NCBI RefSeq assembly: GCF_016432865.1
Contig: NC_067403.1
Location: 256,246,001 to 256,310,000 of the forward strand
Length of the DNA stretch: 64,000 bases
Reading direction: 5' to 3'
Source of the DNA: Antechinus flavipes
Taxonomy: Eukaryota
Positions 20,516-49,967 of this stretch are shown piece after piece. Both the position numbers and the translations under genes were made by a program. Numbering within the stretch: the stretch's first letter is position 1; each line of letters begins with the position of its first letter. The notes beneath the pieces were generated by a model that saw only the letters and a program-made list of their open reading frames with translations, was not told the DNA's origin and made no database searches.

Positions 20516-22980
20516 TCCTTCAGCATTCAAGTTTAAACAAGGGCCCCCGTGTCCATTAAGATGCAGCTAAAGCCTTCTGGCCACAAAGCCTCCAGAGGCA
20601 CCAGCCCGAACAAGACCGTCCCACCCCAAGGCTGTGCTGCCACCTGGAGAAGCGGGGCTGGGGGAATGAGCAAGCCGGCTACGTGTCAAGATTCCCCCGG
20701 AGCTCAGGGACAGTGTTTCACGGTCTGGGGAATCCCCAGGTGAAGGAGCCCAAGGATCCTGGCACCCATGCTTGGGCGACTGGACCAGAACCCCGGAGGC
20801 CACTCTGACCAGGGAGCTCTTCCTCTCCACTATCTCCAAGGCAAACACTCAGCCCAGCTTGATAGGCCGCAGGGGCAAAGCTTTCAACATCTTCGAGGTC
20901 ATCTGGTGCCCGATGGGCATTGGCTGCCTTGTCTAGACCAACGTCCTTTCCAAAGGGTCTCCTAGAGACCTTCCAGCGGTGAATTCACCTGAACATGTGT
21001 GGGCCCTTCGGGGAAGAGCAGCCCAGGGGCTGAATTGTGCTCCGGGTCCCAGAGAGATGACTTTGAGCATTGGAGATCTGGGTTGTTTGGAGAGATGGGG
21101 ACAGAGGGGCAGAGGGGGTGGGGCTGGGGTGAGATGGCACCCCCCAGCCTCAGGCCTGGGAAAGATTCCCCCCCCTCCCCTCCCCCTGCCTCCCAGCCCT
21201 GCAGCCTTACAAAGAGCAGCTCCCCTTGGAGTTGAGCTCAGAGTTTTGGCGCCTTCCAGACCAAAGGGCCGGCCACTGACAGGTCCCAGAGGTCAGGTGA
21301 TAGACCCTCGTCCCCCACTCCCGATGACCTCTCCCATTTCTCCCTATTCCCTTCCTTTTCTCACATTTGACTTTATTTTTTTCACCTACGAGATGGTTTC
21401 CAGCATGCATTTCGATCAGATTCTGAGCCCCCCCTCGCTCCCCCTTCCCCAATCAGGAAGCAATCTGCATAAATCACACACGGACAACGCCAGCGGCTGT
21501 TAGCGCCCCCTTGGGGTGAGCCCCAGGAAGGAGCAGCGTGGCCCCAGCCCACCGAGATTGGGCGTGGGGCAGATAAAGGGGCTCCGGCCGGGGGCCCGGG
21601 GCTGTGAAGTCCCTGCCCCAGAGGGGTGGGCTCGGGCCCAGATCAATCTGCTGCATAAAAATCCTGTCCCCACTCAAGTAGGCAGGGCAGGAGCAGAGGT
21701 CCTGGGGCCAAGAACAGTGGGATTCAAATCTGACCCAGCTAGGGGATTCTGGGCACGTGCTGACCCCCTCTCGGCCTCAGTTTCCTCATCTGTAAAACAG
21801 GGATCACGAAGGTCCCTTTCTCCCAGGTGTGGGGAAGAACAAAGGCAGCCCTGAAAAGGTGGTCACGGTGCCCTCCTTGCCTCCATGCCCCTCCCCCACG
21901 CGGCCAGCTCTGGCTCTTAAAGCCTCGGACCTGAGTTCTGAAGCCGTGTCCTTCGTGGACCCGGACCTCGTCCTCCCGAACTGTGACAGGACTCGGGGAG
22001 GGGGGCAGCACGCACCCCCCCATTGCACACTCGAAGCCCAGCTCTTGTGCATCTCTGCCCCCCAAACCCCAGCACCCCCCAGGTTCTTAATGCCCGGATG
22101 AGGGAGTGAATGAGCCAAAGGATGAATGGGGGGAGGGGAGCAGGAGGTGGGGAGGGATGGGAGGGGAGCAGAGGCAGGAAGGGGCAGGAGCCAGGGGCCA
22201 GCTGCACCTTCTCCAGGGCAGAGATCGCACTTGGGGAAGAGAGAATGGGAGCAAATGCTCAGCCATAAGTCCTGGCCCCTTGGAGAGAAGGGGAGAGCCG
22301 CCCACCCCCACAGCTGTGGGGAGGAGCAGCAGCGCCCCCTGCTGGGAGGGCCCGACGTAGACAGGGCAGCACTGGGCAGGGAGATGGGGAATGCGAGTAT
22401 GTGCGCATATGTGCTTCGGTGGCATTTTCCGGCCTAAAACAGCAGCCCCGCCTGCGAGGGGGCACCAAGCCCTGGGACACAGCCCGGAAAAGCTGTGCTT
22501 GCCGTGGCCAGCCTGCCCTCGGTCCACCCAGGGCTGCCCACAGGCCTTTTCCTGGCAGCAGAGAATTGGAAGCGGGCTGCTGGCCCCTGATGCCGGCCGG
22601 CCCCCGATGCCCGCCCTGCAGGAGCCTGCTGAGGGGCTGAGGGACCTTGGGGGCCCGGGAAGCCCGGGAAGATTTGCCTGAGGTGATGTGGCCTTGTGGG
22701 AGTGGAAAGCCCAAGCTTCCCAGAAGAGCTGTGGGGGGAAGGGGGGGTGCCGTGGTCAGGTGGTCCTTCCTCCCATGACCAGGACTCGAGGGAGCTGAGG
22801 CCGCCACCAGCAGGTGGAGCAGACCCAAGGGGGTAGGGCTGGGGTCACCGGCCTCACTTTCCCCTGCAGAGCCAGAGGGTCCAGGGGCCAGAAACAGATC
22901 CGGACGCAGTGGGAGGCCTGGGCCTGCATAGGATAAGGCCTTAAATCTGTGATTGTGGCTGGGTAAGAAAGGAGGCGGAA

Positions 22981-23400
22981 TGTAAGGGTCAGGGGAGGAG
23001 CCTCCCAGAGCAAAAGAGGAAGTACTGAGACCTTGAAGCCCGAGGCAACCGGAAGTAATCTCTGCAGCCAGCAGGCACCGCCTCTTGAGCGGGAGCTCTG
23101 GTGGGATTGAGAATTCCCTTATTGGCTGCGCCTGTGACCTCACAGACCCTATGTAGCAGTGGGGACCAGGAAGTGGGTGGAGGTCGTTAGCAGTCGAGGC
23201 TGGAGGGAGGGCAGGGGGAGTGCAGGGCGTGAGCCCATGGAATAAAGACTTGTGCTTGCAAGCCGCTGTGTCCAGGCCCCCCCACCCCCACCCCCACCCC
23301 GAACAAGAACCGCTGCGCAGAGGTGGCAGGGCCCGGGACGGCCAAGGCCAGGGGTTGGTAAGCTGGCAATCAGTAACCTGGGGGGGGGGGGGGGGCTGCA
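22981..23400 (+). mobile_element. Putative 5' LTR of the ERV
   Basis: Begins TGTAAG (22981), AATAAA at 23241-23246, ends CA (~23400). Followed by a degenerate tRNA-Lys-type PBS (gcgccaacgtcggggg, ~23404-23419) and a gag-like start ATGGGTCCGGGCCTAAGT at 23472. Boundaries are inferred. Confidence 0.45.
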
Positions 23401-23471
23401 GCAGCGCCAACGTCGGGGGCAGGAGGGGAAGGTTCCCCAGACTCTGAGAGATGAGAAGGCAGAGAAGCATT

Positions 23472-26400
23472 ATGGGTCCGGGCCTAAGTGTCTGAGCCCT
23501 AGAGTATCGTTGTGCAGGCAGCTCAGGCAAATAAGTTAGAAAGGCCGACGGCTGATTCTCTGGCGGACACCTCTGGTGAGGGGCCCAGGGCTGGCTCCCA
23601 AGCTCCCAGGCCTTTACTCCCACATCCCCCTCAACCCGGAAAAAATCCGGAGGTGAATGAGGGGATTAGGCCTTTAGAAGCAAAGGGGCCAGAACCTCCT
23701 CTGGAGGCTGAGCTAGGGGAGAAACACAAAACAGGAAGTGCGAGAGCTCCACCTACAGGCTGAGCCAGAGAAGAGACTAAAGATTACAAAGACCTGTTAC
23801 TTTCCCAATGGAGCTCAGAAAGAGCCTCCCCCGCGGGCCTTGGCAGGAAGCTTTGATAAAGGCAGCCTCGGAGGGGGAGGATGTGATTCCATGGGATTCT
23901 GATTGGGGCCTCCAGGCCTACCCAGGGGAGGATGACGGGGCCCCGAGGCCAGATGTATGGCCCAATCCCATTCCAAATGTTGAAGGAAGTGAAAGAAGCT
24001 TGTGTTAATTATGGCCCCAATGCTCCCTAGACCATACAGATGTTCCAGCTGATAGCAAGTACGCATGCCCTCACCCCGAGTGACTGGAAATCCGTGGCAT
24101 CTGCCTGTTTTACTCCTGGCCAATCAGTTTCACGGCTATCAGAATTTACTAAAGCAGCTCGGAAATATGCTGTGGCCAGTGTTCCTCAGGAGCCAGAAGA
24201 GTCTGTGCTTATAATGACCGGCACTGGCCGCTGTTCCACAACTCAGCCGTTCTACGATGTGACTTATTTCCACCGATTGCACACTGCGCTCCACAGGCTC
24301 GGAAGACAATAGATATAGAGGGGTTGGTACAGCAATATCTTACTTCAATAAAACAGGACCCCCGAGAACCTATTGCGTCCCGATTAAGAACAGCGGTTGA
24401 CAGAATTATAGAGGAAGGTGTCGCTTCTGACCTTCTTTTGAGAAACTCTTAAAAGAGGGAATGAATAAAGCGTGCAGCCGTAGAGTGCGTGGACTTCCTA
24501 AAGAAGCTCCTATCTCCGAAATCAGAGACAAATGCTATGAAGCAGATGATGAGGCTGTTAATGCAGAGGCACTGGCCTCAGCTATAACTCAAGGAATAAC
24601 ACGGGGAATAAGCAGGAGGGATGAAGGAAAGAAGTGTTACAGTTGTGGCAGGAAAGGACACGTCCAAGCCCAATGCCGTCCACGGCCACCAGGGGGCGGA
24701 AAGCCCGTTTGCTCTGTTTGTGGCAAGATAGGGCACATTGCTAAATTTTGCAAGGCCAAGATGAGAAATAATTTTGCAATCCAGGAAAACGGGAGCAGGG
24801 ACCTCAAATGCATAACCAGTAGATCAGGGACCTACTCAGAGAGGAACTACACGATTCAAAGAGAATTATCAAGCCCCGATGAGGAATATGGACAGCACTT
24901 GGTGAATGCAGTTGAGGGTTTTGATACTGCTCCATGGCCTACTGTACATGTTGAGATAACAACCCAAGGGTGGAGATAGATTAGTGATTGGACTCTCAGA
25001 CTATGCCCCTGGAATTGTACATACGATGATATTAAAACATATGAAACCATTTATCTTGGTCACCAATCCTCACCCATATCCTGGGAACTTAAAGGGAGAT
25101 CATCCAATTGCCAAAGCACTCCCATTATATCCCTTTGGTGAGGGGAATTTTATTCAGATTATGGGGAATAGAGAGATAAAGTGAAGAACTTACAAGAATG
25201 TATGAATTCTTTTTCTGTCTTTTATTTTCATTATTTCTGTGTTTCCCCTCTGACCTGTATAATATGTGCAGGCTCCTATCTACTTGAGCCTTGGCCGGCT
25301 AGAAACATATTTACTTAACCTGAGCTGATGACATTTATCGATATTTATTCTATTAGCTGGACCACTGTCTGCTTGATTAAGTCTGAAGGCCTGACTTTGT
25401 TTCCCAGAAATCAGGAGATTTCGGGGAAACAGAAACCTTCCATTCCAGTGTCCCCAAATAGCAACAACCAATTAGCTGCCTCCCCCTCCCCTTCTCAATG
25501 CTCCCTTACTTGGGATGTAATCTCTTGTATAAAAGCTATGTATCTTTCCTACTTCTTTAGCCCTCCTCCTGCGAGCTTTCGAGCTTTCTCTTTCTTATCT
25601 CGCGATGGGACGGTTCATCCTCCGGAGGTTTTCAATAAACAACTTTTCTGCCTTCTACGGAGTGATCTCTGAGTAATCATTTTGGGTAAGGGTCTTCTAC
25701 GTCCCTCACAAGATGATTGGACAAAAGGCCCATGTGTACTATGTATATAGAAAATAGGCCATTTCAAGGAATGATTGATACAGGGGCTGATAATATCCAT
25801 TATAACAAAACTTGATTGGCCTCCTGAACGGCCGCTACAAACCCAAAGAGTAACAGTTAATGGGGTGGGCGGCAGGCAGCACGCTTCCCAGTCTATTAAG
25901 AAATGTCATTGGAAATTTGAAGATCAGAAGGCTCTTTAGGCCTCTTGTCATCGCTGGATTTAGAACCTCCTTGTGGGGAAGAAACTCACTGAAAACCCTT
26001 CAGATAACACTAGACACTGAGGAAAACTAACGGGGCCAATGAGAAGGTGCCACCTTTAAGATGGAAACATGACCCTCCTGTATGGGTGGATCAGTGGCCC
26101 CTCCCAGATGAAAAACTCACTGCCTTGAGATCCCTCATTATGGAACAAAAAAAACTGGATCATACTGAGCCCTCCTTTAGTGCTTATAACTCGTCTGTTT
26201 TTGTCATTAGGAAAAAGAACAAAGCATGGCGCATGTTAATTTGAGAGCTGGGAACGCCGCCACGCAGCCCATGGTGCCCTACAACCAGGCCTCCCATCTC
26301 CTAACATGGTCCTATATCATATGGTGGTGATTGACCTAAAGGGTCGCTTCTGTTCTGTTCCTTTACATCCTACCGACAGGGAGAAGTTTGCCTTCTCTGT

Positions 26401-34300: not shown

Positions 34301-35269
34301 GTATTTTACTTCTTTATTTTTACACAGCAGTGGGGTTAAGTGATTTGTACGGGTCACGTTTAAACTCAGTCTTCCTACTCCAGGGCCAGTGCTCTCTCCA
34401 CTTTATCCCCGAGTGCCCCTCTGTCCACTTGAAGGGCTGCCCAAGGAGCCAGGACGTGGCTGAGGTGAAGAAGTCTCGGATTAACTCGGTGTCACCAGGA
34501 CATACATGACAGCACGAGTCTGACAAGTCCTGTGCTCTTGGAGCAGGACAATGAGAGCTCGGGGTCCAATTCCCTCATTTCAGAGAGGAGGAAACGGAGG
34601 CCCAGGGCCTGAAAGGTCACACATCATCCCAAAAGCAAAACCAAGATTTGAACTCTGGACTCTGGACTAGAGATTCTCAACTGTCTCTCCAACAGATTCC
34701 ACTGCAAATGAATAATGTATTGGAATCTAGAGAGGGCTTTGGAAGGGGCAGATTAAGTGCTGGTAACTGAGGAAAGGCAATTTCCATTCCGACGATCCCA
34801 AGGACCAGAATCAAGGACAAGAATCCTCATCATTCCCACCTTGGGATAATGGTTCCAGCAGGGGGCAGCACCAAAGACCAAGGTGGCTACTTAAGGGAAC
34901 GCTGGTTGCACTTACAAGGCTTTGACCGGAAGCTCCTTTGCCCTTGTGTGGCCTTCCTTTGCTGGGGTTACTCTGCCGATCATTGGACAAATTGTAGGAT
35001 GCTGGATTAGGCAGTTGGTAAATCAGAAAAGCAAAGCTCCATACTCCCCGGGGCCAGGGAATCTCAGAATGCCGGGGCTGCCATCCCGGCAAGGCAGGGA
35101 TCTGTGGAAAGGAGGAAAATAGTGTCGTTGGCATTTGTGTTTTTGAATTCTTGCTAATTAATGTTCAGGGAGCTTTTGTCTATCTGGTAAGTGGTTTATG
35201 TCCACCTTCTCCTCGCACCGCAGGACTGGAGAGGCATTAGGGGACTGGGGTGTCCAGAAAGATGTGGAT

Positions 35270-35405: not shown

Positions 35406-36173
35406 CAAAAGGGACCAATGAACATCAATTGGCTGAAGTAACGGTGGGCGATGGGGACAATGATAGAACTGAGGAAGGGTGGCTTGGGACACAGGCCAGC
35501 TTTGGTTTGATAAGGCATGGAAGTACCGGGAGAAATCATCTTTTTGTCAGATGAGGTCATGGAAAAATGGACCATTATCATTTTTTGTAGTTGTTGTCGA
35601 AAGAAGAGGGGTGTGGAAAAGCAAAGGCTGGGGAAGGTCTGTTGGGACCCCTGATGGCTCTTGGGCCTGGCTAGGGATTTGTCTAAGCAGGCAGGTGCAC
35701 TGGCAATGTGGGGGAGAGGAGGAGTCCCAAAGGGTACCATTAGCTAGGGGGAGGCTTCCTAATCCTCACCTTGCAGTTCTTTTATCACTTCATTCTTTCT
35801 CCTTAAGCATGCTTAGAGACATACACCAGGCACCCAGTCTGCAATCCTCCACAAGGTTTCTTCATTCTCCATTCTTTGATTCTCTAGAATTTCCATCAGA
35901 ACCTGCCTTCTCCAGGCCTGCTCTCTCCGCCCCTCATTCTTCCCCTCGAAAGGCCTGGCAGATGGCATCTCCTTCCTTCTGTGTAGCCCCACTTTGGGGG
36001 CACCTGTCAATAATACTGAAACCCACTTTTCTGGGTCCCTTCTAGAGTCCCACACTTCCATCTTCTTCCCTTGCAAAGCCCCATCAAGTCCATTCTTTCT
36101 AAGTTCCCCCACCCCTAATGGCTCGATGCCTTCCTTCATGCCATTGGTTGCTTCAGCCACAATCTCTCTCCCT

Positions 36174-38807
36174 CTATTCCCCTTCAGGCTCCTTCTCCCC
36201 CTCTCCCCCTTCAGGTTCCTTCTCCCCTTCTCCCCCTTCAGGTTCCTTCTCCCCCTCTCCCCCTTCAGGCTCCTTCTCCCCTTCTCCCCCTTCAGGCTCC
36301 TTCTCCCCCTCTCCCCCTTCAGGCTCCTTCTCCCCCTCTTCCTCTTTCTCCCCGCCTTGAAGGACTTCCTTCTTTTCCTCAGCCCCTTGACCAGGCTGCT
36401 CTCCTTCCATCATTTCTTGGGCTTTTACAGGGCTCGTCTTCCTGTTGGCTTCTTCTCCTTCGTTGGCTATGTCGGCTGTGTTATCCATGGCGTTCTCAAA
36501 GTTGGTTTCTGAGAATTGTGTCTTACTCTTTTCGGTAGGGTTACCTTCCTCAGCAGATAATGATTTTTTCTTTTCGTAACCTTCTGACCCTTCTTCTTTT
36601 GGAAGTGTCTCAGTCATTTCCTCGTCTTTGCTCTTTGCGACCCCTTCAATCACCAGCCATAAGGCTTTGCCGTGGTCCAGGGGCTCATCACCTTCAGGAG
36701 TCTTCACATCTAGAGTCTGCTCATCTTCTGTGGCCAGAAGCTGATCAAGTTCTGCTCCTGAGGTCAGCTCCCCTTCTGTTCCTGAGGTCAGCTGGCCTTC
36801 TAGCGTGGAGGTCAGCTCCTCTTCTGCCCCTGGAGTCACCTGGCCTTCTGGCCCAGAAGTCAGCTCGTCTTCTGCCACTGAGGCCTGCTGGCCTTCTGCC
36901 TCTGAGGTCAGCTCACCTTCTGCCGCTGAGGCCTGCTGGCCTTCTGCCTCTGAGGTCAGCTCCTCTTCTGCTCCTGGGGTCACCTGGCCTTCTGCCTCTG
37001 AGGTCAGCTCCTCTTCTGCTCCTGGGGTCACCTGGCCTTCCAGCCCAGAGGTCAGCTCGTCTTCTGCCACTGAGGCCTGCTGGCCTTCTGCCTCTGAGGT
37101 CAGCTCACCTTCTGCCGCTGAGGCCTGCTGGCCTTCTGCCTCTGAGGTCAGCTCACCTTCTGCCCCTGAGATCTGCTGGCCTTCTGCTTCTGAGGTCAAC
37201 TGGCCTTCTGGCCCTGAGATCTGCTGGCCTTCTGCTTCTGAGGTCAACTGGCCTTCTGGCCCTGAGATCTGCTGGGCTTCTTGCTCTGAGGTCAGATCCT
37301 CTTCTGCCTCTGAGGTCGGCTGCTCTTCTGAGGTTTGTGGGCCTTCTGGCCCTGAGGTCTCCTCCCCTTCTGCTCCTGAGATCTCCTTGCCTTGGGCCTC
37401 TAAAATCTCCTCACCTTGGGCCTCTAAGATCTGCTTGCCTTCTGTCTCTGAGGTCTCCACTTCTACCCCTGAAGGGGGCTTGCTTTCTGACTCCGAGGTC
37501 TCAACCTGTACCCCTGGGGTCTGCCCTGCCCTGGAAGGCCGCCTGCTTTCTGACCTTGAGGGCCGCTTGCTTTCTGCCCCTGAGGGCCGCCTGCTTTCTG
37601 TTCCTGAGGGCCGCCTGCTTTCCGCAAGCGAGGGCCGCCTGCTCTCCGCAAGCGAGGACCTCCTGCTTTCCGCTAGTGAGGGCCGCCTGCTTTCCGCTAG
37701 TGAGGACCGCCTGCTTTCCGCAACCGAGGGCCGCCTGCTTTCCGCAACCGAGGGCCGCCTGCTTTCCCCTAGTGAGGGCCGCCTGTTTTCCGCAACGGTG
37801 GGCCTCCTGCTTTCCGCAACGGTGGGCCTCCTGCTTTCCGCAACGGTGGGCCTCCTGCTTTCCGCAACGGTGGGCCTCCTGCTTTCCGCAACGGTGGGCC
37901 TCCTGCTTTCCGCAACGGTGGGCCTCCTGCTTTCCGCAACGGTGGGCCTCCTGCTTTCCGCAACCGAGGGCAGCTTGCTTTCTACACCGGAGATATCCTC
38001 ACTTTCAGGGGCACCTTCTGCTCCTGAGGTTGGCTGGCTTGCCTCACGAGACAGTTTTCCTTCTGTAGCTGGAGTCTGCTCTCCTTCTACGCTCGAGGTC
38101 TTGTCAGGTTCAGTGGCGGGGGTCTTGTCGGGTTCAGTGGCGGGGGTCTTGTCGGGTTCAGTGGCGGGGGTCTTGTTGGGTTCAGTGGCGGGGGTCTTGT
38201 TGGGTTCAGTGGCGGGGGTCTTCTTGCTTTCTGACTTTGAAACCTTCCCTGGATGCCCCTCTTCTGCCTGGACAGCTTCAACCGTGGGGGGATGCCCTAT
38301 TGGCCCTGCAGCCCCAGCCTCAGGGGGATGATACCTTTCTTCTGGCCGGGCAGCCCCAGCCATCGGGGGATGCTTCCCTTTGGCCCTGGCAGCCTCCGGT
38401 GTCTTGATTTCTTGTGGCTGGCCGCCGCCCTCCTCTCCGCTGAGCTCCCGTCCGGCGGGGCCTTCGGTGGACTCCTTGGAAGCGGGTGAGGGCGGCGGGG
38501 GCGGCGGGGCTGCCGGCTGGGCCGAGACTTTTATTTGAGGCTTCAAGCTGTGGCCCCTCACCTGCAGCGGCTCCCAGCTGAACCACAGCCTCTGGTGCAG
38601 GATCTTCACGCATTTCCGGGACTTGGTGCCCCTGCCTGGGGATCGGGAATGGGTCGGGGTCGGAGACGGCGAGCGGGAGGACAGCTTCTTGACCTGCAGG
38701 GTGTCCCGGATGCTGTCGACCTCAGGGATGACGCTGGCCCACGGCGGCGCCTTTGGCCGCGTCCGGCCCTGCTGTCTGCTCGCCAAGCGGCGGCCCTTCA
38801 CCTGCAT
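36174..38807 (-). CDS. Uncharacterised low-complexity tandem-repeat protein (877 aa from the first in-frame ATG; frame open to 39287)
   Basis: 3.1 kb without a stop. Four repeat blocks, all with units that are multiples of 3 nt (24, 24, 24/48, 27). Protein-like unique segments (EGLTPQSWWSIDPW, KCVKILHQRLWFSW, LWLVIEGVAKSK). GC-box/NRF1 promoter directly upstream. The tracker's start at 39287 is TTG; the first ATG is at 38807. No family recognised. Confidence 0.75.
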   Translation of the reverse strand: MQVKGRRLASRQQGRTRPKAPPWASVIPEVDSIRDTLQVKKLSSRSPSPTPTHSRSPGRGTKSRKCVKILHQRLWFSWEPLQVRGHSLKPQIKVSAQPAAPPPPPPSPASKESTEGPAGRELSGEEGGGQPQEIKTPEAARAKGKHPPMAGAARPEERYHPPEAGAAGPIGHPPTVEAVQAEEGHPGKVSKSESKKTPATEPNKTPATEPNKTPATEPDKTPATEPDKTPATEPDKTSSVEGEQTPATEGKLSREASQPTSGAEGAPESEDISGVESKLPSVAESRRPTVAESRRPTVAESRRPTVAESRRPTVAESRRPTVAESRRPTVAESRRPTVAENRRPSLGESRRPSVAESRRPSVAESRRSSLAESRRPSLAESRRSSLAESRRPSLAESRRPSGTESRRPSGAESKRPSRSESRRPSRAGQTPGVQVETSESESKPPSGVEVETSETEGKQILEAQGEEILEAQGKEISGAEGEETSGPEGPQTSEEQPTSEAEEDLTSEQEAQQISGPEGQLTSEAEGQQISGPEGQLTSEAEGQQISGAEGELTSEAEGQQASAAEGELTSEAEGQQASVAEDELTSGLEGQVTPGAEEELTSEAEGQVTPGAEEELTSEAEGQQASAAEGELTSEAEGQQASVAEDELTSGPEGQVTPGAEEELTSTLEGQLTSGTEGELTSGAELDQLLATEDEQTLDVKTPEGDEPLDHGKALWLVIEGVAKSKDEEMTETLPKEEGSEGYEKKKSLSAEEGNPTEKSKTQFSETNFENAMDNTADIANEGEEANRKTSPVKAQEMMEGEQPGQGAEEKKEVLQGGEKEEEGEKEPEGGEGEKEPEGGEGEKEPEGGEGEKEPEGGEGEKEPEGGEGEKEPEGE
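36178..36345 (-). repeat. 27-nt coding repeat (EGGEGEKEP) about x6
   Basis: Unit ccccttcaggctccttctccccctctc on the + strand. Confidence 0.95.
36760..37400 (-). repeat. 24/48-nt coding repeat (LTSEAEGQ / QASAAEGE / VTPGAEEE)
   Basis: Recurrent ggccttctgcctctgaggtcagctc units with higher-order duplication. Confidence 0.9.
37533..37975 (-). repeat. 24-nt coding repeat RRP(S/T)xxES x18
   Basis: Seven identical gcaacggtgggcctcctgctttcc units (37792-37959) plus 11 diverged units. Confidence 0.95.
38098..38223 (-). repeat. 24-nt coding repeat KTPATEP(N/D) x5
   Basis: Unit ggttcagtggcgggggtcttgt(c/t)g. Confidence 0.95.
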
Positions 38808-39169
38808 CGGGACGCGGCGGCGGAGGTAGCCACGGGCGCGCGTCGAGGGCCGCAGGCCCGGCCGTTTGGCCCCCGGGGCCCAGGGTGAGGACTGCAACCA
38901 CGGGTCGATGCTCCACCAGCTCTGAGGGGTCAAGCCCTCCTCTTCCGCCGCCAGCCTGCGGCCCCACACGGCCACCCCCCGCTGCCGGACCGAAGCGCGG
39001 CGGCTGTAGCCTTGGTGCCGGCAGCTGGGGCCCGCATCCCAGCGCCAGGTGCCCACCTCCCCGCCCCAGGGCCATGGCCACACCCGCACCCAGGCCAGTC
39101 GGCCAGGCCTCCAGCCCAGGCACACCCTTATCCTCCACCCCGTCGCCTGCGCCCGCCCGCCCCGGCATC

Positions 39170-40102
39170 GGACCCGGCGACGCCCCCTCCCCCGCCCCAG
39201 CCCCAGCGCGCCCCCAGTCCCGCCCTTGCCCCGCCCCTGATCCGCCCGCGGACCCGCCCCTGGCCTCCCTGCCCTCCGCCAGCCCAAAGGCGTGGGGCTG
39301 GAGGGCGGAGGGGCGGCGCAGGCGCAGCAGCTCGAGGTCCGCTGCGCGCCCCGCCCCTGCGCCGAGGGGCGGGTCTACGCCTGCGCACCAGCTGCTCTGG
39401 GACGGCTCGGGGAGAAAGGCGAGTGAAGGGGCGGGGCAAGAGATGGGCCCTGGAGGCTGGGGAGACCCGGGACTGTTTCCGTTTTGTTATTCCATCTGAG
39501 CATCCCCAGCACCTAGTAGAGTGCACGACCATTAGTAGGTGCTTTATTGAGCACTGTTCATTAATGCTTGTGCAATGATTGGCGAGGAATGGGGGTAGGG
39601 CGCGAGAGAGGAGGGACGGAAAGAAGGGGATGGGGACTTAGCGGAAAAGAGCCTCGAGGCGTGGGAACCCTGCCTGTCCGGAGGGGGCAGCGCTCGGCCC
39701 CCAGCTCCTCTCTCTTCGGTTTCCCCCGCCCGCTAACTGCGACCTGCATTCCCCCTTAAGAGGCAGCGCCCGCTGCCGGGAAAGACGGCCAGACAGGCCA
39801 ATGGAAGCACGGAGGCCGGGCCCTCGGTCCATTCAGAGCGCATTGGGGGCGGAGCCTCGAGATCTACGCCTCTCTCTAAATTACTCTCTCGAGGGCAGGG
39901 GTGGAAGACTGGGCCGGCGCGGTCCCTGCAGGCTCCATTCATTCTTCATCAGAGCGGGGCGGGGTAGGAGGGCTGCAGGGGTGGCGAGAGTCTCCCAGGG
40001 CCGGGAAGGGGTCGAGGCGGACGAAGCGCCCAGGCGGCCAGAAGCTAGCCCTCGCCCTCCCTCTCGTAGGAGCAGGAGAGTGGAGGTGTCAGAGGACCAG
40101 TG
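39170..40102. promoter_or_regulatory. CpG-island bidirectional promoter between the repeat ORF (-) and SNX32 (+)
   Basis: Dense GGGCGG boxes at 39180-39430; NRF1-like GCGCAGGCGCA at 39316-39326 and CGCCTGCGCA at 39378-39387; CCAAT/ATTGG at 39578, 39798 and 39842. Confidence 0.65.
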
Positions 40103-43100
40103 ATGGAGGAGAATCCCGACCCCGGGGAGGAGCGCNNNNNNNNNNNNNNNNNNNNNNNNNNNNNNNNNNNNNNNNNNNNNNNNNNNNNNNNNNNNNNNNN
40201 NNNNNNNNNNNNNNNNNNNNNNNNNNNNNNNNNNNNNNNNNNNNNNNNNNNNNNNNNNNNNNNNNNNNNNNNNNNNNNNTATGGCTGTCAGATGCCTTGG
40301 CTGGGGCCCGGCTTCCAGGAAGGGTCCCTCGGGCTTTCAGAGAATGGGGAAGGGGCCCCTGAACAGGCAGTAGAGTGAGGGCCAGGGCAGCTCTCCGAGG
40401 GAAGGCGGGGATGGGGAGGTCACAGAAGACCGGGGCCATCACTAGCCCAAGCTCAGTTTACAGATGAGAGTCAGTGTGCTCAAAGCCAGGCAAGACGAAA
40501 TCAGCAGAGCCATGGTTGGGCCTCCACATCTCTGGCTCCAGGCCCTTTGCTCCTCCCTCCTCCTGAGTCAGTCACATCCTGAGGGAAATCCCTGAACTGA
40601 GTGGCCTACGGGACCCCAGGATCCCCCCCTCCCCCCCTCTTCTGCCTTCTCAGGCTGATCCCATGTGAGTGTCTGTGTGTGTCCATGTGTATCTGTGTGT
40701 GTGTGTCCGTGTGTGGTGTATGTGTGTCCATGTGTGTCCGTGTGTGTCCATGTGTGTCTCTGTATGTGTCCGTGTGTCCATGTGTATCTGTGTGAGTGTC
40801 TGTGTGTGTCCGTGTGGTGTATGTGTGTCCATGTGTGTCCGTGTGTGTCCATGTGTGTCTCTGTATGTGTCCGTGTGTCCATGTGTATCTGTGTGAGTGT
40901 CTGTGTGTGTCCGTGTGTGAGTGTCTGTGTGTCCGTGTGTGGTGTATGTGTGTCTCTGTGTGTGTCCGTGTGTGGTGTATGTGTGTCTGTGTGAGAGTGT
41001 GTGTGTGTCCATGTGTGTCCGTGTGAGAGTGTGTGTGTGTCCGTGTGTGGTGTATGTGTGTCCGTGTGTGTCCGTGTGTGTCCATGTGTGTCTGTGTGAG
41101 AGTGTGTGTGTCCGTGTGTGTCCATGTGTGTCTCTGTATGTGTCCGTGTGTCCATGCGTGTCCGTGTGTGAGTGTGTGTGTCCGTGTGTGGTGTATGTGT
41201 GTCCATGTGTGTCCGTGTGTCTCTGTATGTGTCCGTGTGTGAGTATCTGTGTGTCCGTGTGTGAGTATCCGTGTGTGTGTCCGTGTGTATGTCCATGTGT
41301 GAGTGTCTGTGTGTCCGTGTGTGGTGTATGTGTGTCCATGTGTGGTGTATGTGTGTCCATGTGTGGTGTATGTGTGTCCATGTGTGGTGTATGTGTGTCC
41401 ATGTGTGTCTGTGTGTGAGTATCCATGTGTGTGTCTGTGTGTGTGTCCGTGTGGACAGGCAGAGAGCAATGGCTGACAGCAGGCCCAGCTAGTCTCCAGG
41501 GACCCTGCCTTGCACTGACCGTCACAGAGAGAACAGACCCAGGGACTCGGGACACTGAGACAGGGAGGGCAGGAGAGAGGCGGTCTCCCGGTGGCTGCAG
41601 AAGTCAAAAACGTTCTCAGAGCAGGAGCACAAGTTGAGCGGCCTGAGCCTCCCCGGAGGAGACAGGAGCGCAGGGCCCTGGCGGGTCCCGTGGCGTGGAG
41701 TGCAATTGAAACCAGTCTGGCCCAACTAGAAGTTATTGAAGGCCCACGTAGGGTGCCGTTGTGGGGGGTCTTGGGGTCCTGCCCCTGGTGTGTTTCTGTC
41801 TGTGTGAAGAGGTCTGGGCCCTCTTAAGTTGCAGTGCAGCCCCCTGCTTGAGAGTAGTGGGGGGCGAGCCCCCCTTCTGTGGGCGGCTCTTTTCCATCCC
41901 TAATGAATGCCTTGGCTGGTGGGATTCCTTAGTCTGTCGGAGTGTTCCTCAAACCCCTGCCTGCCGTCCACGGCCTCCAGGTGAAAAGGAAGAGGCCAGT
42001 TGTTCCACCACAAGAGGACACCTGTCACCCCTCCCCTTGGGCCAGGGGTGCTCCCTCCCCCCCGCTGTCTTGGTCTCTGTCATGGAGGGGACTTGAAGGA
42101 AGAAGGAAGGATACCACCATCTGTGTCCCCCTTTTTGATTGGTAACCTTCACAGACACAGATCCTTATGGAAACCTTCCTGGTGGGTCTCAGGCTGATCA
42201 TACCCATTTCACAGATAGAGAAGGCTGACAGATGTGGAAAGGGAACTGCCCTGGAAGGCTTGGCTCCTGACAGTGAGCCTTTATTTATGTAGCTCCTTCA
42301 ATATGCTCTGCACTTTGACCTCCTATCTCTGGGGAGCCCCACCCCAGTGGTGTAAGGTGAACGACGCAGAGACCCCAGCTCCCCAGGCCAGTCTCTAGGA
42401 TCCAGGTCTCACCAGTTCCCTGCCTGAAAGCCAGCTTGCGCCCGGGCGGACAGCCAGCCTCCCGAGTGAGGGAAGGGGAGTCCTAGGAGCACGGGCCAGT
42501 TTCGTGTCCACTTCTGAAGGATGTTCTTGGATCGTTCTGGAGACTCGGGGCCACATGAGGGACTGGGGCAGGGGCAGTGAGGACGCGTGAGCTTAAGGAG
42601 ACACGAGAGCCCCAAAGTGGGGCGGGATCCGAGGTCCCCGCCCAGCCCCCACCGCTTTGGTGACCGTGGCCATGGGCCCCTCTGTAAAACCTGAGAGGGC
42701 CTTACTAAGGGCTTTGCTGCGAGGATTCTCGGGCCGCGGGGGAGCGGTGGGCAAGGAGGGCAGATGGGCCGGCCAGGGGCCCCGCCCCAGCGCCCCCTCC
42801 TCAGCCCCGCTGTTTCCGTGGGTCTGCAGGGAGATGGCGCCTTGCAGGTGGAGATCTCCGATGCTGTGAGTGAGAGGGACAAGGTGAAATTCACAGTTCA
42901 CACCAAGGTGAGGTCGTCACTCCCCCCCACAGAGACTGGTTCCGAGGTCAGGGGCCTCTAGGCCGGGCCTTGGGCCTCCTCCAACCGACCCGGGTTCTGG
43001 CTCCCCGAGCCCCATGGGGATTGTGGGAAGCATCCCAGAGCAGAGCATGGGGGAGGGGGGGAGGGTGCCCGAGGGGGGAGGCGAGGTGGCCAGGGCGCCT

Positions 43101-46100
43101 CAGTGGGGCCCCTTCCTTTCAGAGCTGCCTCCCCCACTTCAGCCAGACCGAGTTCTCCGTCGTCAGGCAACACGAGGAGTTCATCTGGCTCCACGACGCT
43201 TACACTGACAACGAGGACTACGCGGGCATCATTGTGAGGCCCTGGACTCGGACCCCAGGGCTGCCCCGGGAGCTGGCAGGGACCCCTGGAGGCCGAGTGC
43301 AGCCGGGGAGGGGGGAGGCGGACCGGGCCCCGGGAGCCCGCCGCAGCCGTCTCAGCTCCTTTCTGTTCTGAGCAGATCCCCCCGGCTCCCCCCAAACCAG
43401 ACTTTGAGGCTTCGCGGGAAAAGCTGCAGAGGCTGGGGGAGGGGGACAGCTCGGTCACCAGGGAAGAGTTTGCCAAAATGAAGCAAGAACTAGAGGGGTG
43501 AGACACCCCCTCCCCTCCTGCGTCTACCCTCCCTCACCCCTCGGCTCCCGTATCCAGGGGTGTGTCATAGTGGCTGGGGCGGTCTGGCACCAGGAAGCCC
43601 CGAGTTCTAGCCTGCAGCAGTCACCAATCCTCGCTCCTTCCGGCCTCTGACCCTTCTCACAGAGGGGCTAGCCAAGGCTCCTCTGTCACAAAGCAGTCGG
43701 GGAGGCCCTGGGGCCCGGGGAAGACTCCGCTCCTTTGGAGAGAAGTTGGGGCACGCTGATCAGCCCCTTGGGTTAACAATGGGAGGAACGACAGGAGAGC
43801 TCATCTCCTCACAGAGGATTCAGGACCTTGGGCAGCGGGGGATAGAGCAGCAGGTGCAGCAGTGGTTAGAGCATCAGGCCGGGAGTTCAGATTTGGCCTC
43901 AGACACTCATTAGCTGCAGCACCCTGGGCAAGTCCCCCCCCCCCCCCCCCTCCCTCGGTCTGCCCCATTTTCCTCATCTGTGAAATGAGCTGGGAAAGGC
44001 AATGGCCCACCGCCCCAATCTGCTGAGAACCCCAAATGGGGCCCCGAGCTACCAAAAACCTCCGTTTTATGGCCCAAGTAGATTAAGGGACTGGAGCAGG
44101 TCAGGGAGCAAGGCAGGTGGGCCTGCACCACTCAGGCTTCAGGGCTCCCTGGTGGCCCACTTGACCCCAGCCTGCAGGGAGTGGCGCCCTGGCTCCAAGT
44201 GGGGCAGCTGATGTAGGCAGTGTTGGACCCGAGTTCCAATCTAGCCAGATAGTGAGACCTTGGACAGCTCACTAACCTTTGCTTCTACTACAAAAGGGGG
44301 ATAATTCAGCCTCTGCCTTCCTCAATGGTGACAAACAGGATTTGTAAAAGCACTCAGTGCTTATACACACTAAATGGGAATAATTGGCCATAGTGCCTGG
44401 CACACAGTAAGTAGGTGCCTTATAAATGGGACTATTTGGCCATAGTTCTTGGCATGCAGTAGGTGTTGTATAAATGCTTCCCTCAGGGACTTTTTTGACT
44501 ATAGTGTCTGGCACACAGTAGGTGCTGTATAAATGGGACCGTTTGGCTATAGTGCCCAGCAAGCAGTAGGTGCTGTATAAATGCTCCTTCCCTAAGAGTC
44601 TGTCTGGTCCTAGTGCCCAGCACACAGTAGGTGCTATATAAATGCTTCTCCTTCCCTCAGGGAGTACCTGGCCATCTTTAAGAAGACAGTAGCCATGCAC
44701 GAGGTGTTCCTCCAGCGCCTGGCTGCCCATCCCACGCTGCGCCGGGACCACAACCTCTATGTCTTCTTGGAGTACGGCCAAGATGTGAGTTGCCCCCAGA
44801 CCCTCCGAGCAGCCCGGAGGGGCCTGGCCAAGGCTGACCCTGCCCCCATCCCTGTGGGAGGGGCCTGGCCAAGGCTGACCCTACCCCCATCTCTATCCCA
44901 GCTGAGTGTTCGTGGGAAGAATAAGAAGGAGCTGTTCGGGGGGTTCATCAGGAACATTGTGAAGTCGGCAGACGAAGCCCTCATTACCGGAGTGTCAGGA
45001 CTGAAGGTGAGGGCCTGGGGGGGCTGAGTGGGCCAATGTCCAGTGGGAGCTCAGGCCTCCTCTGGCCTAGTCGGTCCCAGAGACCCTGGGGGCCGGGTTT
45101 CCCTAGTGGAGGCCCTTGGGCCTCACCCTGCAGGCCTCTCCCCTCCACCTCTGCCTGCCTCCTAGGAGGTGGACGAGTTCTTCGAGCACGAGAGGACCTT
45201 CTTGCTGGAGTACCACGCTCGAATCCGGGACGCCTGCCTGCGAGCCGACCGCGTCATGCGCTCCCACAAGTGTACGTGGGGACCCCCGGGGCCCCTCCTG
45301 AAGGCCCAAGCGGGGACGAGCCAAGGTGTGGTCTTTCCCCGTTGCCCACAGCCCCCCGCCAGGCTCTGATGGCGGACACGCCCCTAACAGGCTTGGCCGA
45401 GGACTACATCCCCATCTCCGCGGCGCTGAGCAGCCTGGGCACCCAGGAAGTCAACCAGTTAAAGACGTGAGCTGCCCCTTGCCCCTTTTGCCTGTCACTC
45501 TCCCCCAGGCCACTAGGCCCCAGGTAACCGGGGGTGGGGGGTGTCCAACAGCCTCGCCCACGCCGCTTCTGCCAGAGGGATGCCAGGGCACCCCCGGGCA
45601 AAGGCCTGCCCCTCTCCTTTCCCAGGAGCTTTCTAAAACTGGCTGAACTCTTTGAACGTCTGAGGGTGAGAAGTCCTTCCTGCTTTTGACTTGGCCCCGT
45701 CCGTGGGAGGGCACCTTGGGGAGGTGGGGGGCAGGCACAGGGCCCAGAGATCCAAGTGGCTGCCGAGACCCTGGGGTGGGGACCCGCAGGGGAGATGGGC
45801 CCCGCGCTGCCCCAGTGTCCCAGGGCGCGGAGCCTCCCCCCAGGGCCAGGCCCTCCCTCGTCCGCCCCACAGAAGCTGGAGGGCCGGGTGGCCTCCGACG
45901 AGGACCTGAAGCTCTCCGACATGCTCCACTACTACATGAGGGATGCCCAAGCAGCCAAGGTGAGAGGCCCTTCTGGGCGCTGCCCGGGCCCGGCGCTCGG
46001 CCCCAGCCTCGGGGGGCCTAGCCTCGCCTGGCTCCCGGTCTCCCTCCCCTCAGGACCTGCTCTATCGGCGGCTGCGGGCGCTGGCCGACTACGAGAATGC

Positions 46101-46615
46101 CAACAAGGCCCTGGACAAAGCCCGGATGAGGAACCGCGAGGTGCGGTCGGCGGAGACGCACCAGCAGCTGTGCTGCCGCCGCTTCGAGCGCCTCTCGGAC
46201 TCGGCCAAGCAGGGTGAGTGAAGGGCCGGGCCGGACCCCCCCCACCCCACCGGAGCGGGCCAGTGCAACCCGGTCTCCTGTCCCTTTCTTTGGCTCAGAG
46301 CTCACTGACTTTAAGGCTCGCCGAGGCTCTGCTTTCCGAAAGAACCTCATCGAGTTGGCTGAACTGGAACTCAAACACGCCAAGGTAACGCTGCCTGCCG
46401 GTGGGGGAGGCGGAGGACCACGCCCAAGATGGCGGGCAAGGTCGGCCCCCTGGCTGAGGGTGGGGAACTGAAGAGCTCACTCTGATGGCAACGGCTCATC
46501 CACCCCAAGTCGTCCTGGGCCCTGCCTCCCCACCCAGAGCACCCCCTTCTCTCTTCCCCAGGCCAGTACGCTTCTTCTAAGAAACACCCTCATTGCCCTC
46601 AAGGGGGAACCCTAG
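40103..46615 (+). CDS. SNX32: Sorting nexin-32 (PX-BAR), 13 coding exons, ~407 aa
   Basis: Exons: 40103-(gap; [11 protein letters not shown]), 42791 (or 42805)-42907, 43123-43233, 43376-43497, 44661-44784, 44902-45006, 45166-45271, 45391-45466, 45626-45665, 45873-45959, 46054-46213, 46299-46384, 46562-46615. GT-AG junctions with consistent phases. Motifs [47 protein letters not shown] and C-terminal LKGEP*. AATAAA at 46831-46836. Confidence 0.95.
40660..41452. repeat. Complex (TG)-rich satellite in SNX32 intron 1
   Basis: About 790 bp of gtgtgtcc/atgtgt/gtgtggtgtat variants. Confidence 0.95.
43845..44045 (+). mobile_element. MAR1-like SINE in SNX32 intron 4
   Basis: gcagtggttagagc...gagttcagatttggcctcagacac...ccctgggcaagtc...ttttcctcatctgtgaaatg plus RTE-type tail gagaaccccaaatggg. 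Confidence 0.7.
44389..44660 (+). repeat. Tandem array (x5) of an L2-3'-end-derived unit ending at the SNX32 exon 5 acceptor
   Basis: Core (a/c)tagtg(c/t)(c/t)(t/c)(g/a)gca..cagtaggtg(c/t)t.tataaatg, with alternating ~50 and ~60 bp units. Confidence 0.85.
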
Positions 46616-47754: not shown

Positions 47755-49967
47755 TCACAAGGGCTTCCCCTCCAGGGAAATCACGGCATTGCCCCCCAGT
47801 TTCTCGGCCAGGGTACAGCGATCCTTCACTTCCTCGTAACAGTTGGCTTGTAATTCGTGTTTGATCCCTGTGAAAAGGAATTGGGAGGGGGGTCAGAGCC
47901 AAGGAAGGCTTAGACCCACCCCCGCTTTACAGATAAAACCCAACCCCAAGCTTCAAAGGTCCCACCACAGTCAATCAGGCTCCTCACCCAGTTCTTCAGA
48001 CCCAACGAAATTCGGCCTTGCGCGCCAAAGAGGGTTACGCTATTGGAAATGCCATCTCACACACGCACGCGCATACACACACCTGTCAGTTTCTTCTTGA
48101 TGGCGTCCTTGGAGCTCGCATAGATCATTTTGCTCTTGAGGGGGGCACACTCGGGGGCCCTGGGAGGAGAGACAAGAGTTAGAAAGCTGGGGAGTGCGTC
48201 CTTGGCTCTGGGCCCAGCCTCTCCAGGGGATCGGCACCCCCCAGACTCACCAGAAGATGAACACGAGGTCCTCCTTCTTGCTCTCCTTGGTCTCGTAGGT
48301 AGCATCATAGAGGGCGTAGCGGCAGTCCTTGTCTGGTAGCATCTTGACAAAGGTGGTATAGGGGTCATCCACGGTCTCCCCCACGTCACCCACCAGGATC
48401 TCCTTGCCCTCTTCCAGCACAATGTTCTTCTTGTCCTCGCTCAGGCAGAACAACACGGCCTTCTTGCGCTTCTTCACCTCCTCGGGTGTGGAGGACTTGC
48501 GAACCTTCATGTCGTTGAACACCTTAATCACTCCATCTGAGACTGCGACCCCAGAGGCCTGTGGGCACGGAGAGCTCAGTGAGGGAGATGGGACGCTCTT
48601 CCCGGGGCCCGTCCCATCAGACTCAAAGAACAAGTGATTGGCTTAGTAACAAAGGGGAGTAGTTAGAAGAATACTTCCAGTGTTTTCTCATTTGATATTC
48701 TTAACAGAGGAAATAGCTGGGTCCCATTTTACAAAAGCATAAACAGAGGCCAAATGATTTTTGCCCCAAAGCAAAAACTAACCAGTCTCAAAAATTGCAT
48801 TTATACTCAGGTCTGCCTCACTCCCAAGCCTTAGCTGCTGCTTTCTCCCTAACCCTAGTACCTCAAAAACATAGAATGGGGCAGATCACCAAGTAGTAAG
48901 GTTTCATTGTTGATTGAGATTCCCTGGCTCCTACCCTGGGCAAGGAGGTCCTGACCCTGAGAACCCTGGCCTGGCCAGCTGGGAAATCCACTTTGGATTC
49001 GGGACCCCAAGAACCCAGTTGGGCAAGCCCACCTTTCTTTGGTACCAAGAATCAGGGGGAACAGCTACTGCTTTAAGGGGCCGCAGATTGGGGGCTGATG
49101 GGAGGCCTGGCCTAGAGGTCACCGAATCACTGAGGACACCTACTCCCCAAAAGATTTGAACTAAAGGGACAAGATCACGGCCTTTCCAGGCTAGGACCAC
49201 GTGGACTGTGGGGCTCCACGGGGGTCCTGCTCTAGCGTCCCTCCTTGGGGTTGGGGGGCAGGCTTTCAGCAGCTAGGCTGCTGCTTCCTGAGTTCGAGGG
49301 GAAGGAGCCTACCCGAGGAAGACGAGCACAGCAACCATTCAGGAAGGGGAGGGCACGTCGGGCGGGGACTACCCCCTTCCGGACCTACTTCCCCAAACTG
49401 GGCCCAGGCCTTAGAGGTTCTCCTGCCCCCCCGCCCCCAGCCTGGGGTGGTCTTGAAATGCCAACACCCCGCCCTCCTTCCAGCTGCTGGGCCGCGTGCT
49501 CAAGGCCCAGCGTGAGTGCGCCCCCTCCCTTTCTCTCCCTCCCCCTCCCCAACTGTCCTTCGCTTTGCTTCAGCTCTCGGAAGGAACGCGCATGCGCGAC
49601 GCCCCCGGGTACAGGAGCCGCGCGCGCCACTAACCCCCCCTTTCCAAGCACCACTTAACGGTTGGGGAGGGTCGCGCGCGTGGCCACTTCGCCCAACAAC
49701 CGTCAACGTCAGACGAGCGCGCGCAGGGAGAGGGGGCCCGCCGGCGCGCGCGCGCCCGCCCGCCCGGCCATCCGCCTGGCGCACGAGCCCCTCCATCGCT
49801 GCCGGTCTCGCCCGCGGCGTCCCAGGAGGGGGAGGGGAAGAGATGGAGAGGATGGAGAGGAGGATGGAAAGGAGGATGAGGACACCGCCCCGCCCGCTGC
49901 ACCGCCTACACCACCCCCGCTCCCGGGCGCCGGTCCCCCGCGGAGCTCTCTGGCCCGCGCTCACCAT
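47755..49967 (-). CDS. CFL1: Cofilin-1, 166 aa, 4 coding exons
   Basis: Exons 49965-49967 (ATG), 48251-48558, 48083-48159 and 47755-47867 total 501 nt. Sequence [21 protein letters not shown]...[33 protein letters not shown]...EGKPL*. AATAAA (minus strand) at 47251-47256. Confidence 0.98.

Follow-up and report, generated by a model that had tools for sequence, protein, structure and literature searches.

The locus and the reading frame

A window of 64,000 nucleotides from Antechinus flavipes, the yellow-footed antechinus (assembly GCF_016432865.1, contig NC_067403.1, positions 256,246,001 to 256,310,000 of the forward strand) was analysed with respect to one long open reading frame (ORF) on the minus strand, which lies beside SNX32 and would code for a repeat-rich protein. 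An earlier note on this DNA had proposed that the ORF is an unrecognised protein-coding gene. The ORF list places it at 36174..39287. It starts with a TTG at 39287, ends with a TAG at 36174-36176 and has 1037 codons; counted from stop to stop, the frame extends from 39374. Translation from the first in-frame ATG, at 38807 (38805-38807), would give a product of 877 amino acids (aa). Tandem Repeats Finder reports four arrays within the ORF, with indels at 0-1%. The array units, read in register, are KTPATEP(N/D) x5, (A/G/T/S)E(S/N)(R/K)R(P/S)(S/T)x x18, an acidic block of the TSEAEGQ type, and (E/G)EGEKEPEG x6. The unit lengths of all four arrays are multiples of 3, which was counted in favour of coding. 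The features are listed below from the stop codon upstream. L004 and L005 are the devil-type locus and the Tasmanian devil record described further below, L002 is a locus from a more distant marsupial, and dN/dS is the ratio of replacement to synonymous substitution rates.

36174..36176, minus strand: TAG stop (ORF list); the devil model and the devil ORF finish at the orthologous stop, L005:20281
36177..36346, minus strand: C-terminal array of six 27-nt units, (E/G)EGEKEPEG (Tandem Repeats Finder: 27 nt x 6.7, 36167-36346)
36347..36749, minus strand: C-terminal unique segment, 134 codons, 0 stops (shuffle P=0.001)
36750..37330, minus strand: acidic array of 48-nt (2 x 24) units, LTSEAEGQ/QxSGAEGE type (Tandem Repeats Finder: 48/24 nt x 12)
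37331..37532, minus strand: linker 2, acidic and degenerate, with a weak 24/48-nt periodicity (Tandem Repeats Finder, stop count)
37533..37982, minus strand: array of eighteen 24-nt units, ESRRP(S/T)(V/L/G) (Tandem Repeats Finder: 24 nt x 18.6, 37537-37982)
37983..38096, minus strand: linker 1 (stop count; dN/dS 0.31 vs L004)
38097..38222, minus strand: array of five 24-nt units, KTPATEP(N/D), followed downstream by two degenerate units (Tandem Repeats Finder: 24 nt x 5.2)
38223..38807, minus strand: N-terminal unique segment, 195 codons, from the first in-frame ATG, basic (stop count, alignment)
38808..39374, minus strand: the same frame, open upstream of the first ATG, 78% G+C, no ATG in dasyurids (alignment with L004, Dromiciops and L002)
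39057..39092, minus strand: invariant Trp-rich block WVRVWPWPWGGE, identical in four lineages
39375..39377, minus strand: in-frame TAG that closes the frame upstream, common to Antechinus and L004
39378..40102, no strand: probable divergent promoter region, CpG-rich, GC 0.69; a CCAAT box lies near 39805 (minus-strand ATTGG), and the alignment with Dromiciops and L002 is at 72-76%

The ORF list, Tandem Repeats Finder and the stop counts of the segments bear out the description in the earlier note: a frame open for about 3.1 kb across four arrays, stop-free non-repeat parts, and this layout. The single large exon proposed there also agrees with the sequence, which has an uninterrupted, exon-sized ORF at least from the first ATG to the stop.

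Openness of the frame

No stop interrupts the minus-strand frame in any of the nine segments; the unique segments, read in the other five frames, contain 1-13 stops. Openness within the arrays alone means little, because two plus-strand frames are likewise open across the repeats (502 and 508 aa). This favours an alternative in which the ORF is a by-product of purine-rich, T-poor repeats. The DNA would then be part of a non-coding divergent transcript (promoter-upstream or long non-coding RNA) or untranscribed minisatellite DNA, and the gene models of other marsupials would be longest-ORF calls. Also in line with it, just 0.7-5.6% of the possible point changes in the repeat units make a stop, and the unit-to-unit variation within the window has no significant synonymous bias (27/67 distinct variants), so that array variation does not prove coding. 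We nevertheless regard this alternative as unlikely. The unique segments, which are stop-free in this frame alone, speak against it. The chance of finding no stop was estimated by dinucleotide-preserving shuffles, unique segment by unique segment. The C-terminal segment gives 0.001 and the N-terminal one 0.08, and the two linkers give 0.09 and 0.2; the product of the four is about 1e-6, if the segments are independent. On the window sequence alone, the frame is likely to be coding.

Orthologs in other marsupials

Orthologous loci were reached from the CFL1 exon in the window via marsupial cofilin-1 proteins, and from there to the surrounding DNA and its gene calls. The gene order MUS81-CFL1-SNX32 is found in every assembly fetched, and in nine other assemblies the order as well as position and orientation match those of the window. 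Eight marsupial assemblies annotate a gene without Pfam domains just past SNX32 on the opposite strand, with a product of 532-1067 aa:

GCA_019393635.1 (Dromiciops): 807 aa
GCF_003287225.1: 682 aa
GCA_011100635.1 (which we take to be the brushtail possum): 626 aa
GCA_028372415.2 (tammar wallaby): 1067 aa
GCA_028583685.1: 532 aa
GCA_900497805.2 (wombat): 591 aa
GCA_037893015.1 (bilby): 654 aa
GCA_902635505.1 (Tasmanian devil): 928 aa, complete, L005:17300-20281

The gene can therefore not be called unrecognised, as the earlier note had it: a model at the same position and in the same orientation exists in eight assemblies, and that of the devil extends to the orthologous stop. The proposed restriction to one lineage fits the comparison, since orthologs were found only in marsupials. 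They were seen in Dromiciops, diprotodonts, the bilby and dasyurids, and the gene is probably restricted to marsupials.

Antechinus and Tasmanian devil: selection on the frame

Two loci were used for the closest comparison. The devil-type locus L004 (GCA_048593225.1) is identical to the devil record L005 (GCA_902635505.1) wherever the latter is clean, and was treated as coming from the same or a nearly identical species. In L004, the orthologous frame is open for 850 codons, up to the end of the locus. A tblastn search against it placed residues 1-800 in a single alignment at 76.6% identity. L005 supplies the 3' half of the devil gene and ends at the same stop; its C-terminal 218 aa are 90% identical to Antechinus.

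The devil model of 928 aa agrees with the Antechinus ORF in position, in its orientation divergent from SNX32, in its collinear frame, in the four repeat types and in the stop codon. It differs in having one KTPATEP unit versus five in Antechinus (a 96-nt indel), in a 13-codon insertion, and in repeat units that are mostly RKPS versus RRP(S/T). The indels within the ORF are all multiples of 3 (9/9: 39, 96, 24, 24, 48, 3, 24, 45 and 45 nt), and several of these lengths (39, 3, 45) are not multiples of a repeat unit. By contrast, none of the seven indels found within 500 nt past the stop is a multiple of 3 (0/7: 1, 1, 1, 1, 19, 1 and 5 nt).

The substitutions point the same way. Between Antechinus and devil, dN/dS is about 0.5 in the ORF frame versus 0.7-1.9 in the two shifted frames. 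In a permutation test, each observed substitution was relocated to a site of the same base and CpG class. In the ORF frame, there are 80 synonymous changes versus 62.8 +/- 6.5 expected (P=0.005) and 0 stop-creating changes versus 5.45 expected (P=0.003), and the other frames have neither the synonymous excess nor the stop deficit. This is the pattern that translation leaves in a frame when purifying selection is weak, in agreement with the coding status that the earlier note had assigned. A non-coding transcript or minisatellite accounts poorly for indels confined to multiples of 3 up to the stop and not just past it, or for a stop deficit and a synonymous excess in one frame only.

The individual segments behave as follows. 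The N-terminal unique segment has a dN/dS of 0.41, which falls to 0.25 for 38475-38807. Linker 2 has a dN/dS of 0.46 and a single 3-nt indel. The indels of the acidic array are of 24 and 45 nt, both multiples of 3. The C-terminal unique segment, which carries the sole hydrophobic patch of the C-terminal half (GKALWLVIEGVAKSK), has 14/134 residues changed and zero indels. In the C-terminal 27-nt array, full units differ only by GAG/GAA at third positions, all synonymous. The array has six units in the devil too; that this unit number and the stop position are kept between the two species also argues against a non-coding origin.

The devil model has two oddities: its start ATG is in another frame, and it skips 195 nt. 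Both lie within L005 17017-17640 and 18436-18686, very GC-rich and repeat stretches to which many frame-shifting indels of 1-7 nt are restricted. Neither L004 nor Antechinus has these indels, which are probably errors in the assembly of L005; the odd start and the 195-nt skip are probably artefacts of these.

The 500 nt after the stop, 36173-35672 (minus strand), are 96% identical between Antechinus and devil and thus more conserved than the ORF. This region may be a constrained 3' untranslated region. The closest AATAAA is 1.86 kb downstream of the stop, at 34318.

Distant marsupials and the 5' end

Outside the dasyurids, the loci fetched cover only 0.8-1.4 kb of the gene. In Dromiciops (locus L001), no frame but the orthologous one is open, for 361 codons, and the same holds for L002 with 277 codons; both counts run to the end of the locus. 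Aligned to the Antechinus frame, the orthologous frame is about 37-46% identical, and 43% over about 300 aa in a single frame. That the same frame is the sole open one in two distant marsupials is a further point against a non-coding by-product. The N-terminal unique segment contains a block, RKCVxIxHxRxWxSWEPLxVRG, that is common to Antechinus and Dromiciops.

Conservation does not begin at the first ATG. The Trp-rich block WVRVWPWPWGGE sits upstream of the first dasyurid ATG, and across four lineages it shows five synonymous and zero replacement changes. The whole stretch 38808-39374 aligns to L004 without gaps at 2.8% divergence. Between Antechinus and devil, it has 8 synonymous changes versus 3.5 expected (P about 0.01, in this frame only). 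In Dromiciops and L002, the frame is open and collinear across it. The ATG at 38805-38807 is kept in the devil and is GTG (Val) in Dromiciops and L002. At the position of the dasyurid TAG (39375-39377), neither Dromiciops nor L002 has a stop, and in-frame ATGs lie upstream there. The annotated starts vary: that at L002:21558 is in frame, while those at L001:21049 and L005:17300 are in other frames.

Given that the dasyurids have no ATG before 38807 and share the TAG, and that the annotated starts vary, translation may begin in a spliced leader, at a non-AUG codon, or not before 38807. From the conservation pattern, the coding frame probably starts further upstream than 38807, via a spliced leader or a non-AUG start.

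Several points weigh against a functional gene of this kind in Antechinus. Within the dasyurids, constraint is weak (dN/dS 0.5), and the ORF, at 6-10% nucleotide divergence, is no more conserved than the flanks, at 3-4%. At greater depth, the N-terminal part compared with Dromiciops and L002 has a dN/dS of 0.65-0.9, and its conservation is patchy. The A. flavipes record L003 (GCA_016432865.2), which is 100% identical to the window over 2381 nt, annotates no gene past SNX32, and L004 is likewise without a gene call at this locus. In dasyurids, a conserved upstream frame has no ATG between the TAG at 39375-39377 and 38807, and this in-frame TAG, common to both dasyurids, closes it. The first ATG has a weak context and is preceded by out-of-frame ATGs, for example at 39168.

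The weak constraint at depth, the variation of annotated N-termini between species and the lack of a gene call in L003 and L004 are also to be expected of a non-coding transcript. The start-codon points suit a different explanation, namely that the gene is real elsewhere in marsupials but has lost its original start in dasyurids, being N-terminally truncated in Antechinus or drifting to a pseudogene. This is favoured by the TAG that Antechinus shares with the devil-type locus, by the in-frame ATGs further upstream in Dromiciops and L002, by the out-of-frame ATGs upstream of 38807, and by the missing model in the Antechinus record. We consider it very unlikely. The TAG predates the split of Antechinus and devil, yet about 850-1060 codons have stayed open and frame-preserving in both. 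The synonymous excess persists in the frame between the TAG and the ATG, and decay fits the pattern less well than a non-AUG start or a spliced leader does.

On balance, the gene is very probably real. We consider it likely, as a somewhat more demanding statement, that the Antechinus ORF is a protein-coding gene, the unannotated ortholog of the genes predicted in other marsupials, that it shares a promoter with SNX32, and that its product is disordered.

The distance between the ORF gene and the SNX32 start codon is 0.7-1.3 kb, with a CpG-rich stretch and a conserved CCAAT box in between. This arrangement suggests that a divergent promoter, likely common to the two genes, occupies the interval. 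A short element (…aataaagcacctacta…tgcactctactaggtgctgggga…) is found at the same place of the promoter region in Antechinus (39490-39560, minus strand) and Dromiciops (L001:21290-21370). The annotated start codon of L002 falls inside this element, which we take to resemble a MIR/core-SINE fragment.

The predicted product

The product from the ATG has about 93 kDa, a pI (isoelectric point) of 4.6 and 86% disorder-favouring residues. Its first 100 residues are basic, and it contains about 400 acidic residues rich in S/T-x-x-E (CK2-type) motifs; the net charge of the acidic array is about -13 per 50 aa. The earlier description as largely disordered is supported by this composition, by the lack of a Pfam domain and by the lack of a confident fold. 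AlphaFold2 was run on the N-terminal 384 residues with a 4-sequence alignment and gave a mean pLDDT (predicted local distance difference test) of 35.7; this agrees with disorder but counts for little, given so shallow an alignment.

Every unit of the 18-unit array holds the R-[RK]-x-[ST] consensus of basophilic (PKA-type) kinases. In Antechinus, there are 18 such sites at a spacing of 8 residues, 14 of them followed by V/L/I/F/M. L004 also has 18, of which 13 are followed by a hydrophobic residue, with a unit that is mostly ESRKPSV. Between the two, the PKA-type motif is kept while its neighbouring residues drift.

The most likely scheme is as follows. The gene would be transcribed from a CpG-island promoter, head-to-head with SNX32. 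Translation would yield at least 877 residues from the first ATG, encoded in one exon, with a frame that probably begins upstream by a spliced leader or a non-AUG start. The product would be intrinsically disordered and strongly polarised, with a basic N-terminus, then the 18 ESR(R/K)P(S/T)-hydrophobic units and finally a long acidic S/T-x-x-E tail. It may be a scaffold, or a substrate phosphorylated at many sites, on which PKA-type and CK2-type kinases act, the basophilic kinases setting its net charge. Evolution would be fast, through gain and loss of repeat units in whole codons and weak constraint between short motifs. It counts against the kinase-substrate part of this scheme that it is drawn from consensus motifs only. 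A bolder version is rather improbable: a marsupial-only, rapidly evolving disordered scaffold of about 90-110 kDa, in which the array and the acidic tail form a phosphorylation charge switch, for example in sperm or in some other structure specific to the lineage, and in which the Trp-rich N-terminus is translated in dasyurids via a non-AUG start or an unseen leader exon.

Sperm proteins like FSCB (fibrous sheath CABYR-binding protein) have a large single coding exon, low complexity, short tandem repeats and many basophilic-kinase sites, and are phosphorylated by PKA. The ORF product resembles FSCB in architecture only, without sequence similarity. The likeness to sperm fibrous-sheath proteins (FSCB, TEX55) drawn in the earlier note is thus an analogy, as it was put there. 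In contrast to scaffolds of the AKAP/FSCB type, the product has no match to the amphipathic RII-binding helix of AKAPs (regular expression of the published pattern) and no Pfam or PDB match. Like Treacle (TCOF1), it has an acidic array that is repetitive and rich in S/T-E, with CK2-type motifs and adjoining basic segments; unlike Treacle, it lies at another locus and has no LisH or Treacle domain, and the two do not align.

Homology searches

A word-index search with the whole ORF and a search with its N-terminal region gave no matches, and the exact look-up of the 877-aa product returned no record. An exhaustive phmmer search with 142 aa of the C-terminal unique segment against 1.84 billion representatives also gave 0 matches, a false negative given the devil model. 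The blank protein searches are misleading, because an annotated devil ortholog with 90% identity exists. Evidently, the devil product or its cluster representative is absent from the reach of the protein libraries searched. Blank searches with low-complexity proteins should not count as novelty.

Pfam reports no domain in the ORF product, only sub-threshold low-complexity matches. Two of these, both on the RRPS array, were rejected: cornifin/SPRR (PF02389; 17.5 bits versus a gathering cut-off of 34.8) and the T4 gp5 C-terminal repeat (PF22178; 21.7 bits versus a cut-off of 30.9). The PDB search found no solved relative, and Rfam has no matches over 30-44 kb. The best score in the ESM Atlas is 0.65 (a Treacle-type cluster) against a lead threshold of 0.9, and is uninformative. 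In all, no sequence similarity beyond the marsupial orthologs was found in the Pfam, PDB, protein and language-model searches, and a limited literature search found no paper on the gene. A transposable-element ORF was ruled out by the lack of a Pfam match and by the single-copy, syntenic locus, and an extra 5' exon set of SNX32 by the opposite strand.

Implications

The gene was already known as a prediction, uncharacterised, in eight marsupial assemblies. What this analysis adds is that the Antechinus record lacks it, together with the evidence that selection acts on its frame, the conserved array of kinase sites and the start-codon question. For annotation, a gene of at least 877 codons is missing from the A. 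flavipes record, and errors of assembly appear to have distorted the devil model, both at the 5' end and within one repeat array. The gene does not represent a new kind of system but illustrates a disordered protein whose fast evolution is driven by repeats. It adds a lineage-restricted, weakly constrained case that would share its promoter with a conserved gene of the housekeeping type, and such cases are useful for studying the birth and turnover of disordered proteins. Antechinus is a model of extreme male reproductive investment, so that a fast-evolving kinase-substrate protein might be of relevance to the testis.

Neighbouring genes and minor observations

The claimed position beside SNX32 was confirmed, the SNX32 exons being on the plus strand to the right of the ORF. 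The gene looks complete and covers 40.1-46.6 kb, with PX/BAR exons of the SNX5/6/32 type at 42695-46468 in a six-frame reading. Pfam finds a split PX domain in the SNX exons as well as Cofilin_ADF, and the best matches among solved structures are SNX5 and SNX32. The SNX32 start codon, mapped from the annotation of L003, is 40103-40105 (plus strand). A run of N at 40136-40279 probably masks the rest of exon 1. Exon 2 of CFL1 is at 48250-48642 (minus strand) and is 98% identical to marsupial cofilin-1. MUS81 lies further right, at about 50-58 kb, as judged by alignment to annotated loci of other marsupials.

The earlier note had named OVOL1 as the neighbour on the other side. Motif scans of every frame of the window gave no sign of an OVOL1 exon: C2H2 fingers, SNAG motifs and finger linkers are all lacking. 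OVOL1 is flanked by SNX32-MUS81 in mammals including the opossum (PMC3380836), and it is from this published synteny that its place to the left of the ORF is taken.

Intron 1 of SNX32 contains a degenerate (TG)n / 10-nt microsatellite of about 780 nt (40664-41446). It yields spurious ORFs of 240-330 aa on both strands ('HTDTHT' and 'CVSVCV'). Apart from the minus-strand gene, the longest ORF of the window is at 22262-23665 (minus strand). It has 468 stop-free codons, is Pro/Leu/Ser-rich with 60-65% G+C, and may be a composition effect.

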